DNA of 64,000 nt, from sequence record PV472050.1; one strand, written 5' to 3'. Positions 12,397 to 25,408 of this stretch are shown here, piece after piece. Position numbers and translations under genes: made by a program. Under the pieces are notes generated by a model. That model was not told the origin of the DNA, made no database searches, and saw nothing but the letters and a program-made list of their open reading frames with translations. Within the stretch, counting starts at the first letter, position 1. Each line of letters opens with the position of its first letter.

Positions 12397-12421
12397 TCAA
12401 TCAACCGTGGAGATTAACACT

Positions 12422-13765
12422 ATGAAAAGCTTTATTGATGTATCAGTAGTAGAAGATGGGGGCAAACAGTTCCTCTTCGGTATTACTGCGAATCAAAAGA
12501 CAGGACGACCCGAAGTCGTAGGATATACCGATCCTGATTATTTCAGAGAGGGTGTTGACCGTGTGTTTGAACAGCTTATCCGGGAAGAACAAAGAAAGGA
12601 AGCGGATATTAAACTCCAGTTGGCCTTTATTAAGGCGGTCAAGGAACATCCCGGTAAACAACTGCAACTCACGCTTTGCTACAGCGCAAATGGACCGTCG
12701 GCTGGAGAATTTTATTGGGTGGAGGATCGGTGTTATACAGTTGACGGAGTGTCCTTCCTATCGAAAGCACCGGTATGCATCTATCATAAGAACTGTCTGG
12801 ACGGTACTGCGGCAGCTTGGGCGGTAAGAAGCGCGCTCCCCTTGGTTGAATTGGTGGCTATGAGTTATCATGATGATCCGTACGAACTCTTTGGTTCGGG
12901 GTTGGAGTATCTACAAGGGAGAATGGTCTATTGTGTTGATTTCAGTTTTAAGAAAGCGGTTGTAGAAGCGATTGCTAATCTACCGGATACAGGCTTGCTG
13001 ATCTTGGATCATCACGAGAGTGCTCAACGGGAACTGGGTGAACTCGTCGTTGGTTATTCCGGGAAATCAACGCTGGGTGATCGGGTTGAGATTATCATCG
13101 ATATGACACGTTCAGGCGCTAAGTTGACGTACGACTACTTCCACCCTCAACAACCGACGCCTCCGGGTATTCTGGCAGTACAAGATCGGGATCTGTGGAA
13201 ATGGGAGTACGAAGGCAGTAAGGAATGGACCGCGGCCGCCTTTGGGTATCCCCTCACCGTTGAGAGTTTCGATAAACTGATTCATCGGGATTACCAAGAC
13301 GTGGTAGAAGAAGGTCGTACAGTCCTTCGTAAGCAGGAATTGGATGTTGAGAAACTGCTCCCGAGTGCGCGGCCTTACACGTTGGAGGGTTACAACTGCT
13401 TGATTGTTAATGCCAGTTATTTCCACGCCAGTGACGTAGGGGATAAACTGAAGGGTCGAGACGGCATTGACTTTGTAGTCACTTACATGGATGGTAAGGA
13501 TAGCCGTATCTTCTCTCTACGGGGTAAGGATAAAGTGAATCTAGCGGAAGTGGCTGAACGTTTTGGAGGAGGCGGCCACCCTAACGCAGCAGGGTTCACC
13601 TTGAGCTTCAACGATCCTCGTTTCTCTCGATCTCACGCTGAGCTGTATTCGGATAAACAGGAGGGGGATTACATCCGGTACCCGATCGTAGGTATTCCAT
13701 TTGATGGGGGGTGGTTAGTATACAAGCTAACCACCCTGTTCTCTCTATTTTTTTTTTCGGGATAA
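12422..13765 (+). CDS. DHH/DHHA1 family phosphoesterase with an extra N-terminal region
   Basis: YHKNCLDG, VDFS, ILDHHES, DRDLWKW and GGGGHPNAAGF motifs. ATG at 12422 after gtggag. Confidence 0.88.
   Translation: MKSFIDVSVVEDGGKQFLFGITANQKTGRPEVVGYTDPDYFREGVDRVFEQLIREEQRKEADIKLQLAFIKAVKEHPGKQLQLTLCYSANGPSAGEFYWVEDRCYTVDGVSFLSKAPVCIYHKNCLDGTAAAWAVRSALPLVELVAMSYHDDPYELFGSGLEYLQGRMVYCVDFSFKKAVVEAIANLPDTGLLILDHHESAQRELGELVVGYSGKSTLGDRVEIIIDMTRSGAKLTYDYFHPQQPTPPGILAVQDRDLWKWEYEGSKEWTAAAFGYPLTVESFDKLIHRDYQDVVEEGRTVLRKQELDVEKLLPSARPYTLEGYNCLIVNASYFHASDVGDKLKGRDGIDFVVTYMDGKDSRIFSLRGKDKVNLAEVAERFGGGGHPNAAGFTLSFNDPRFSRSHAELYSDKQEGDYIRYPIVGIPFDGGWLVYKLTTLFSLFFFSG
13709..13757 (+). terminator. Intrinsic-terminator-like hairpin plus T10, lying inside the 3' end of the DHH ORF
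   Basis: gggtggttag-tatacaag-ctaaccaccc, followed by a run of 10 T (13748-13757). Confidence 0.55.
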
Positions 13766-13770
13766 GTGGA

Positions 13771-14196
13771 ATGAATAATTACGGGTATGTGGATGTGTCC
13801 TTGGTAGGACCTGAAGTAGAGGAAATCTTTGGCTTGCTCTTGGAGTGTGGTATTGCACCGGCTGCGGAGTACAACCTGCATTGTACCCTGATGTACGATG
13901 AACAGGCAGAAGAACCGCTGGTAAAACTGAATCCTGATGCGAAATTCACCGCCTACGTGACAGGGATTGACGTACTGGGAGATGGGTTGGTGTTTAACCT
14001 TACCAGCAAAGACCTCGCTGATGAACACCGTAGGTTGAAAGACGGTGGGTATACCCATTCCTTTGATGCCTTCTTACCGCACATGTCTGTCACCTATGAC
14101 TTCGATGAATACGACATGTTGAAAGTGAAGCAAGCGTTTGCAACCTGGGGTGGTCGACAACTCACCTTCAGTAAAGAATCGTTCGGAACCAAATAA
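13771..14196 (+). CDS. 2H phosphodiesterase, Acb1 (anti-CBASS, T4 gp57B)-like
   Basis: Two H-x-T/S motifs (LHCTLMY, PHMSVTY) about 67 aa apart. The segment LVFNLTSKDLADEHRRLKDGGYTHSFDAFLPHMSVTY parallels T4 Acb1 [37 protein letters not shown] (recalled). Confidence 0.8.
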   Translation: MNNYGYVDVSLVGPEVEEIFGLLLECGIAPAAEYNLHCTLMYDEQAEEPLVKLNPDAKFTAYVTGIDVLGDGLVFNLTSKDLADEHRRLKDGGYTHSFDAFLPHMSVTYDFDEYDMLKVKQAFATWGGRQLTFSKESFGTK

Positions 14197-14205
14197 GACC
14201 CGATA

Positions 14206-14235
14206 CTACCCCTACCCTTGACCGGGTAGGGGTAG
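14206..14235 (+). terminator. Hairpin
   Basis: ctacccctaccc-ttgacc-gggtaggggtag. Confidence 0.65.
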
Positions 14236-23731: not shown

Positions 23732-25408
23732 ATGTCTCAAACGCTGCTGGTACATGGTGAAGAAGCCCAAGGGATTATTAAACAGGTCTTGAGTGAGGTG
23801 TATGACGCCGTCACTTCGACCATGGGTCCGAATGGTCAGTTGGTGATGATCAAGAATGGGGTCTCCACCAAGACCACCAAGGATGGGGTGACGGTAGCCC
23901 GTTCCATTCGCTTTGCAGATGAAGCCCATGAATTGGTGAACCGGGTAATTACCGAGCCGGCTACGAAGACCGATGAGGAATGCGGGGATGGCACTACCAC
24001 CACCATCATGCTGACCCATGCGCTCTATCACCTGTTCAAGGACTTCCCAGGTTTCCAACACCACCGGAACATTGAAGACCTGGTAGAACGGGTTATCCAA
24101 CGCTTGGAATCCATGGCGATTCGGGTGGAAGTGGATGACCCTCGGTTGTATCAAGTGGCCCTGACCTCGTCTAACCAGGATGAAAAGCTCGCCCGACTGG
24201 TCAGTGAGCTCTATGCGAATAACAAAGGGAGTTATCCGGATATTGAACTCAAGGAAGGGGTCAACTTCGAAGACCAGATCGAACAAACCACAGGGCGCAC
24301 CATCCGCATGTTCTACGCGAATCCCTGGTTTGCGAAAGGCCATCAAGGGGGTGTGACAGAATTGACGGGGTTTACGGCGTTCGTTATCGATCGTCGGATT
24401 GACAAGGAAGACACCCAGAAGTTGATTGATGGGGTGAATCACCTTGTGAAAACCCACAAACAACACCTGGTCCTTCCTATCCTGCTGATTGCACGAAGTT
24501 TCGAAGAAGCCGCTAACTCGACCCTGATGCAATTGAATGCGGCGCACCCAACCCTGGTAGAAGACGGACGTCCTTGGTTAATCCCGTTGAGTACGCCGGT
24601 AGGTGGTGCAATTGGGACCTCTGAACTGCAAGACATCGCGGTCATGCTGAACGCCCCTATGCTCAGTGACGTAGCGGACCTGACCAAGTTGGATACCCAT
24701 TCGATCAATGGCCAACACGGCCAACTGGAACTGGGGGGTAATCGGTCTATCCTGAAGAGTACCACCCCTAAGGATGAAGACCGGATCGAACAACATGCTC
24801 GGGGTATTGAGGAACTGTTGGAGGGGTTTAGCCTCAGCGATAAGTTCTCTGTACGCGCCCGGTACAACGAACGGCGTATTCGGACCCTACGGGGTAAGTT
24901 GATCACCATTTCCGTAGGCGGCGAAACCTATTCTGAAGTCAAGGAACGGGTAGACCGGTACGAGGATGTGGTGAAAGCCATTCGTTCCGCCTTGGAGAAC
25001 GGTATCCTTCCTGGCGGTGGTGTATCCCTGGTTAAGGCGGTCTTCGGTACGATCAAGGAAGGCCTCGAAGATAAAGACCAGAGCGCTGAGTTTGCTAAGC
25101 GGTATATCAACTCAGGCATCGGCAATGAGTTGATGCGACTGTCCACTATTCAGCATAAGCTGTTGTTCAAGGACACGTCACTGTATAAGGAAAATGGGAG
25201 TTTCCATTTTAATGATGATTGGCTCAATACACCGACCGTCATGAATCTGGCAACTGGTGAGATTGGTACCCCGGAGGGATTGGGTATTTATGACACCGCG
25301 TATGCTTCTATCACTGCGCTGAAAGGCGGACTCCAAACCGCTAAGATCTTGGCCACTACGAAGACACTGATCCTAGGGGAGAAGTTGTCGGCGGTTAAGG
25401 TGCGGTAA
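23732..25408 (+). CDS. groEL: Phage GroEL-like chaperonin (ortholog of EL gp146)
   Basis: TMGPNG, TKDGVTVA, GDGTTT and GILPGGG motifs; 558 aa; no GGM tail; near-identical to EL gp146 as recalled. Confidence 0.97.
   Translation: MSQTLLVHGEEAQGIIKQVLSEVYDAVTSTMGPNGQLVMIKNGVSTKTTKDGVTVARSIRFADEAHELVNRVITEPATKTDEECGDGTTTTIMLTHALYHLFKDFPGFQHHRNIEDLVERVIQRLESMAIRVEVDDPRLYQVALTSSNQDEKLARLVSELYANNKGSYPDIELKEGVNFEDQIEQTTGRTIRMFYANPWFAKGHQGGVTELTGFTAFVIDRRIDKEDTQKLIDGVNHLVKTHKQHLVLPILLIARSFEEAANSTLMQLNAAHPTLVEDGRPWLIPLSTPVGGAIGTSELQDIAVMLNAPMLSDVADLTKLDTHSINGQHGQLELGGNRSILKSTTPKDEDRIEQHARGIEELLEGFSLSDKFSVRARYNERRIRTLRGKLITISVGGETYSEVKERVDRYEDVVKAIRSALENGILPGGGVSLVKAVFGTIKEGLEDKDQSAEFAKRYINSGIGNELMRLSTIQHKLLFKDTSLYKENGSFHFNDDWLNTPTVMNLATGEIGTPEGLGIYDTAYASITALKGGLQTAKILATTKTLILGEKLSAVKVR

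Follow-up and report, generated by a model that had tools for sequence, protein, structure and literature searches.

We conclude that gp126, a 141-residue protein of Pseudomonas phage EL and its close relatives, is probably a catalytically competent phosphodiesterase of the Acb1 family that acts in the cytoplasm to break down the cyclic-oligonucleotide signals of bacterial defence. Judged from its sequence and its modelled structure, gp126 appears to be a distant, minimal member of that family with neither of the known lids, and this absence of any lid is its one notable feature.

The gene occupies 13771..14196 on the + strand of the window, by which we mean the whole 64-kb stretch of DNA that was analysed, and runs from ATG 13771 to a TAA ending at 14196, giving 141 amino acids and a stop. 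The window matched Pseudomonas phage MIZ-Pa99 at 100% identity (PV472050.1; window position = record position - 124000) and nine other EL-like records at 97-99% identity (phage EL, 98%), and the 141-aa protein of MIZ-Pa99 is 100% identical to EL gp126 (YP_418159.1). The EL-like jumbo phage context given in an earlier, sequence-only reading of this DNA was thereby confirmed, as was its description of a 141-aa protein with HCT and HMS motifs, which are read from the sequence as H37-C-T39 and H104-M-S106. Elvirus, the genus of EL, is placed in Chimalliviridae, a nucleus-forming family. The taxonomy line of PV472050.1 puts MIZ-Pa99 in Straboviridae, yet the compared 3.2-kb stretch is ~98% identical to EL (Elvirus, Chimalliviridae).

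The protein was found in 10/10 EL-like genomes, with at least 97% protein identity in each. Eight codons differ between the MIZ-Pa99 gene and that of EL, all eight synonymously and none non-synonymously, and gp126 is under purifying selection. In one EL-like phage, vB_PQ1 (PQ516283.1), the gp126 match falls into two pieces over a stretch longer than the gene, with two annotated features beneath it; either an interrupted gene or a faulty assembly could account for this. A mechanical list of open reading frames extended the same frame upstream to GTG 13711 (161 aa). This start was rejected: the added stretch would take in both a terminator-like hairpin and the last part of the upstream gene, and the 17 close homologues all start in line with ATG 13771, which is also the start given in GenBank.

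Sequence comparison places gp126 very probably within the Acb1 family as Pfam defines it, at a level of similarity well above chance. The protein scored 43.5 bits against Pfam Acb1 (PF23474; gathering score 27, E 3.5e-11), in a match spanning only profile positions 29-122 of 144, compared with 202.7 bits over positions 1-144 for the T4 protein. In a large protein collection, 18 clusters at 50-100% identity, on contigs of up to 240 kb, all carried precomputed PF23474 annotation, and an exhaustive profile search retrieved 681 cluster representatives at E <=0.001, among which every one of the 118 single-domain representatives matched PF23474. No NCBIfam model matched gp126. Against PDB sequences, the 18-sequence profile retrieved FBB1 Acb1 (7t26, E 2.4e-4) and an enzyme of Burkholderia phage BCSR5 (9q2g, E 3.8e-4), and the 118-sequence profile retrieved the same two, FBB1 Acb1 at E 7e-22 and the BCSR5 phosphodiesterase at E 5.5e-20. 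Profiles were required for this result: the PDB search with the single sequence gave marginal matches only, the top one being a spurious sugar epimerase, and was discarded. A match to the Acb1-family profile was also seen in the portal of cyanophage Pam3 (PDB 8hds chain A, residues 482-597; E 2.7e-8), where a 2H phosphodiesterase domain is fused to the virion portal.

The T4 protein itself, gp57B (NP_049750.1), was taken from HM137666.1 as the product of gene 57B after a bridging relative had matched it. Direct BLASTP between EL gp126 and T4 gp57B gave 1e-6 over the second motif, with 37% identity across 41 residues, and hhalign aligned gp57B with the family profile at 87% (E 3.8e-6) over both motifs.

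A different reading is suggested by the database names of gp126, which are 'RNA ligase', 'hypothetical protein' and '2'-5' RNA ligase family protein'. The first of these derives from PHROG 755, which bears the label 'RNA ligase' and matches gp126 at E 1e-27. The protein could accordingly be a LigT/ThpR-type enzyme with a housekeeping task in RNA repair or nucleotide salvage, acting either as a 2',3'-cyclic phosphodiesterase or in the healing of RNA ends. Membership of the 2H superfamily, the PHROG label and a weak match to 2_5_RNA_ligase2 (PF13563, 20.8 bits) are in keeping with this reading, but the last lies under the cut-off of 27, PF02834 (LigT-type) gave no match to gp126 in Pfam, and LigT/ThpR chains were absent from both of the PDB-sequence profile searches. 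An Acb1-like 2H phosphodiesterase, as the sequence-only reading had it, is thus what the family searches returned: PF23474 was passed, 2_5_RNA_ligase2 was failed, and the profile retrieved Acb1-type structures only.

The predicted structure points the same way. An AlphaFold2 model of gp126, built from an 18-sequence alignment, had a pLDDT of 91.7 and a pTM of 0.82 and contained six strands and three helices; according to this model, gp126 has the compact six-stranded 2H fold of the Acb1 type. Foldseek placed it near the BCSR5 phosphodiesterase (9q2g/9q2y; TM 0.71-0.73, E 2.6e-7) and FBB1 Acb1 (7t26; TM 0.62, E 2.3e-5). A T4-like family member modelled likewise for calibration reached TM 0.67 to FBB1 Acb1 and 0.70-0.73 to the BCSR5 enzyme, so the values for EL are comparable and therefore as expected of a family member. 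In a viral structure library, the best matches were named 'Anti-CBASS protein Acb1', and the top one was the RisingSun homologue (TM 0.84, 44% identity). A mid-ranking match to Arabidopsis CPDase (TM 0.65, E 3.4e-4) would fit an RNA end-healing enzyme, but E. coli LigT was far away (TM 0.43-0.45, E 0.035 or worse). LigT and ThpR belong to the same 2H superfamily as gp126 and share its two HxT/S motifs, and they are ~30-45 residues larger, LigT-type chains having 166-190 aa against 141 aa. Comparison by Foldseek had been proposed earlier as the check on Acb1, with grouping beside LigT/ThpR as the outcome that would speak against it; the model gave the opposite outcome and favours Acb1.

The surroundings of the gene bear on the same alternative. 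It lies within a long + strand block, preceded by SbcC-like, NAD-dependent DNA ligase, RNase H and DHH/DHHA1 genes and followed by many small genes of no known function. A position after the ligase, RNase H and DHH phosphoesterase genes would suit a repair or salvage enzyme, but the annotation of the 64-kb window contains neither an RNA ligase nor a polynucleotide kinase; it has no named anti-defence gene either. With the profile, fold and size evidence considered together with this neighbourhood, we regard a housekeeping enzyme of the LigT/ThpR type as improbable, and the assignment to Acb1 sets right the name 'RNA ligase', which is misleading and has spread through GenBank and PHROG-based annotation.

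The gene immediately upstream encodes a DHH/DHHA1 phosphoesterase (12407..13765, +; Pfam DHHA1 E 1.8e-7, DHH weak), which among solved structures is closest to TM1595, NrnA and Rv2837c; these relatives break down linear dinucleotides, nanoRNA and c-di-AMP. The phosphoesterase, which carries an N-terminal extension of ~120 residues with no family match, might be a further enzyme of nucleotide signalling or of clean-up. Two related contigs of 236-240 kb also have a DHHA1 gene no more than ~1.1 kb upstream of their Acb1-like gene, but none is annotated at that place in RisingSun, and a functional pairing of gp126 with the DHH phosphoesterase is a lead only. Compared with EL, ~140 nt are missing and ~65 nt have diverged where the DHH gene ends, immediately ahead of the terminator-like hairpin (window 13630-13700 against L001 5720-5960, the EL sequence). 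As a result, the DHH reading frame is ~40 codons longer than that of EL and runs through the hairpin and its T-run, stopping 6 nt before the start of the Acb1-like gene.

Two stem-loops flank the gene on the + strand. The upstream one (13708..13757), 14 nt before the start codon, consists of 12 pairs followed by 10 T, resembles an intrinsic terminator and is conserved in EL (RNA fold -22.4 kcal/mol, z -3.5), and the other (14206..14235), also of 12 pairs and just 3' of the stop codon, is identical in EL (RNA fold -30.4 kcal/mol, z -4.3). A sigma-70 scan of the + strand near the gene found no promoter, a result of little weight for phages like these, which transcribe with RNA polymerases of their own. 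A GroEL-like chaperonin gene (23732-25408, +), the known hallmark of phage EL, is located ~10 kb further downstream in this strand block.

The catalytic motifs of gp126 are strongly conserved. The first, H37-C38-T39 (HxT; 13879..13887, +), aligns with H44/T46 of T4, and the second, H104-M105-S106 (HxS; 14080..14088, +), aligns with T4 H113/T115 by BLASTP, hhalign and MAFFT. Both histidines are invariant in all 118 cluster representatives; the third position of the first motif is T in 117 of them, and that of the second is S in 90 and T in 28. Two aromatic residues accompany the motifs. Y6 (13786..13788, +) is the counterpart of the base-stacking Y12 of T4 in a MAFFT alignment with T4 57B, in a column that is aromatic in 117/119 sequences (Y in 106, F in 11). 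F98 (14062..14064, +) is the counterpart of the base-stacking F107 by agreement of BLASTP, hhalign and MAFFT, and its column is Y, F or W in 115/119 sequences (MAFFT).

This conservation also bears on the reading in which gp126 has kept the 2H fold without being an enzyme, for example as a protein associated with the virion. Mass spectrometry has detected the homologue CBB_118 in purified virions (7 peptides, 60% coverage), several relatives are annotated 'structural protein', and the 2H domain of Pam3 is joined to its portal, all of which could be taken in its favour. The invariant histidines and the T (117/118) and S/T (118/118) at the third motif positions argue instead for catalysis, and packaging is compatible with enzymatic function, so that we judge a non-catalytic protein to be very improbable. 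The RisingSun homologue, annotated 'putative structural protein', was considered as a further virion protein and set aside: it is missing from the mass-spectrometry table of that phage, and the distant CBB homologue alone has virion evidence.

Relatives of gp126 are found mostly in very large phages. By tblastn, the EL-type protein occurred in 108 phage records, nearly all of them, among the matches listed, genomes of >200 kb; these phages include Chimalliviridae (EL-like, RisingSun, OBP and pTD1-type Vibrio phages) and Rak2-like giants, and the T4-type branch, reached via a bridging relative, is present in >1000 records. Close relatives are gp120 of the Erwinia phage RisingSun and the homologues of uncultured jumbo phages (P0002-P0018), which share 44-69% full-length identity with gp126, have 141-147 aa and the same short termini, and lie in the same genome block after RNase H. 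The RisingSun gene comes after a DHFR gene, whereas that of EL comes after the DHH phosphoesterase gene. More distant is gp118 of the Rak2-like Pectobacterium jumbo phage CBB, the virion-detected homologue mentioned above, which is similar in size to the EL protein, has 31% identity to it and matches PF23474 with 58 bits. CBB gene 118 (L007 1501-1947, the CBB sequence) is located between nicotinamide phosphoribosyltransferase (NAMPT) and Sir2-like genes, a neighbourhood that may be anti-defence.

Considering these results, we propose a model for the action of gp126, in line with the favoured reading of an Acb1-family enzyme that removes defence signals. The chemistry of Acb1 is a two-step, metal-independent cleavage 3' of adenosine via a cyclic phosphate (PMC9117128). 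By homology, gp126 would be a minimal, metal-independent 2H phosphodiesterase whose tetrad, H37/T39 and H104/S106, would perform acid-base cleavage of a 3'-5' phosphodiester via a 2',3'-cyclic phosphate intermediate, with Y6 and F98 stacking on the nucleobases. Its likeliest substrates would be the cyclic di- or trinucleotides that Pseudomonas aeruginosa makes in its cytoplasm as immune signals, against which the nuclear shell of a Chimalliviridae phage would give no protection, and cleavage of the signal would keep CBASS-type effectors from firing. For gp126 itself, catalysis, the class of substrate and the anti-defence role are what we infer.

The selective setting for such an enzyme is plausible, and it would matter for phages of this kind, since nucleus-forming phages hide their DNA yet remain exposed to small-molecule signalling defences in the cytoplasm; CBASS type III-C has been reported to protect P. 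aeruginosa >10^5-fold against a nucleus-forming, phiKZ-like jumbo phage. AntiDefenseFinder gave Tad1 only in phiKZ, and an Acb1-family enzyme in all EL-like phages would therefore truly separate two model P. aeruginosa jumbo phages, EL and phiKZ. The novelty of the assignment is modest, as it is already implicit in the precomputed Pfam annotation and in the names of UniProt homologues, and jumbo-phage proteins are routinely called Acb1. In the literature we found no paper naming both 'Acb1' and 'phage EL', and the supplementary files examined of the Acb1 discovery paper (PMC9117128) mention neither EL, RisingSun nor Pseudomonas. A list of 75 2H PDE proteins in a 2025 preprint does not contain EL; it includes the relatives pTD1, EJP2 and PaBG, of which 0/3 were purified.

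How far the biochemistry of known Acb1 enzymes can be carried over to gp126 depends on a comparison of their ligand contacts. Acb1 is defined by the tetrad H44/T46/H113/T115, by the stacking residues Y12, W74, F107 and W147, and by E141, which contacts the adenine N6 (PMC9117128); in T4 Acb1, a flexible C-terminal lid (residues 145-152) closes over the ligand with W147 (PMC9117128). Residues were mapped with 118 representatives and T4 57B (119 sequences in total) by hhalign, MAFFT and secondary-structure strings. The tetrad is kept in EL as H37/T39/H104/S106, and so are two of the four stacking aromatics, Y6 for Y12 and F98 for F107. W74 is lost: the EL hairpin is 4 residues shorter (hhalign gap), MAFFT puts L69 in its place, and the W74 column is aromatic in only 24/119 sequences. 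The E141 column holds G139 in EL, and the conserved E136 of EL pairs with T4 E138, a sequence-based pairing that superposition could shift. The sequence-only reading of a protein resembling T4 Acb1 is thus borne out for the catalytic core (tetrad, Y6, F98) and fails for W74, E141 and the C-terminal lid with W147.

EL ends at T4 position 143, so that T4 residues 144-152, including the lid, are without counterpart, and 2 residues follow the E141 column in EL as against 11 in T4. In the model, the chain terminates with the last core beta-strand (residues 130-140) and K141 (14158..14193, +; DSSP of the model), without a C-terminal lid, whereas the model of the T4-like relative has a strand at 131-140 and then 10 more residues at lower confidence. 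EL also has a helix (113-122), placed after the second motif and before the final strand, which is missing from T4.

The best solved-structure match, BCSR5 '2H PDE-9' (9Q2G/9Q2Y), shares the helix after the second motif with EL and is 18-20% identical to it, with EL H37 corresponding to PDE-9 H50. PDE-9 shuts its site with an N-terminal lid of ~15 residues, and EL has no such lid: its first strand begins at residue 5, and 5 residues precede the conserved Tyr, compared with a family median of 9.

Published results make these differences relevant to substrate choice. Deletion of the lid of T4 Acb1 was reported to give an inactive protein in the Panoptes assay, and in viral 2H PDEs the core is reported to set substrate specificity, with some groups cutting 0/18 of the messengers tested. 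With the T4-type lid, W74 and E141 absent from gp126, and the lid reported to be necessary for T4 Acb1, the T4 substrate list is not transferable to it, and the two enzymes probably differ in the range of substrates that they accept. The earlier proposal of a candidate anti-CBASS enzyme gains support from the Pfam, profile and fold evidence.

One could also suppose that gp126 is an immune-signal phosphodiesterase, though not an anti-CBASS protein in the T4 sense, with a lidless core tuned to another messenger or sparing some; type III CRISPR oligoadenylates, 2'-5'-linked signals or a messenger yet undescribed would be candidates. Three of the five T4 ligand-contact elements are missing from gp126, the structural groups of viral 2H PDEs differ in their substrates, the core deciding and some cutting nothing in the 18-compound panel, and the closest solved fold is PDE-9, which discriminates 3'3'-cGAMP from 2'3'-c-di-AMP, rather than FBB1 Acb1. 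On the other side, gp126 lies within Pfam Acb1, both solved look-alikes degrade 3'3'-cGAMP, and no particular alternative messenger is pointed to by these data. We consider a phosphodiesterase of this other kind unlikely, and still prefer an Acb1-family enzyme acting on cyclic di- and trinucleotide signals.

More tentatively, and with a fairly low probability, EL gp126 and its jumbo-phage relatives may form a lidless branch of Acb1 with an open site and a substrate range unlike that of T4, for example one that spares the Panoptes repressor 2'3'-c-di-AMP or that accepts other ring sizes, and the enzyme may be virion-carried in some lineages. If this were true, then in lineages that package the enzyme it would be present from the moment of infection. 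Across the family, <=3 residues follow the E141 column in 28/119 sequences and >=6 in only 29/119, so that the T4-type lid seems to be the exception in the sampled family. Since this lid is apparently exceptional, the biochemistry of T4 and FBB1 Acb1 may not describe most of the family to which gp126 belongs.
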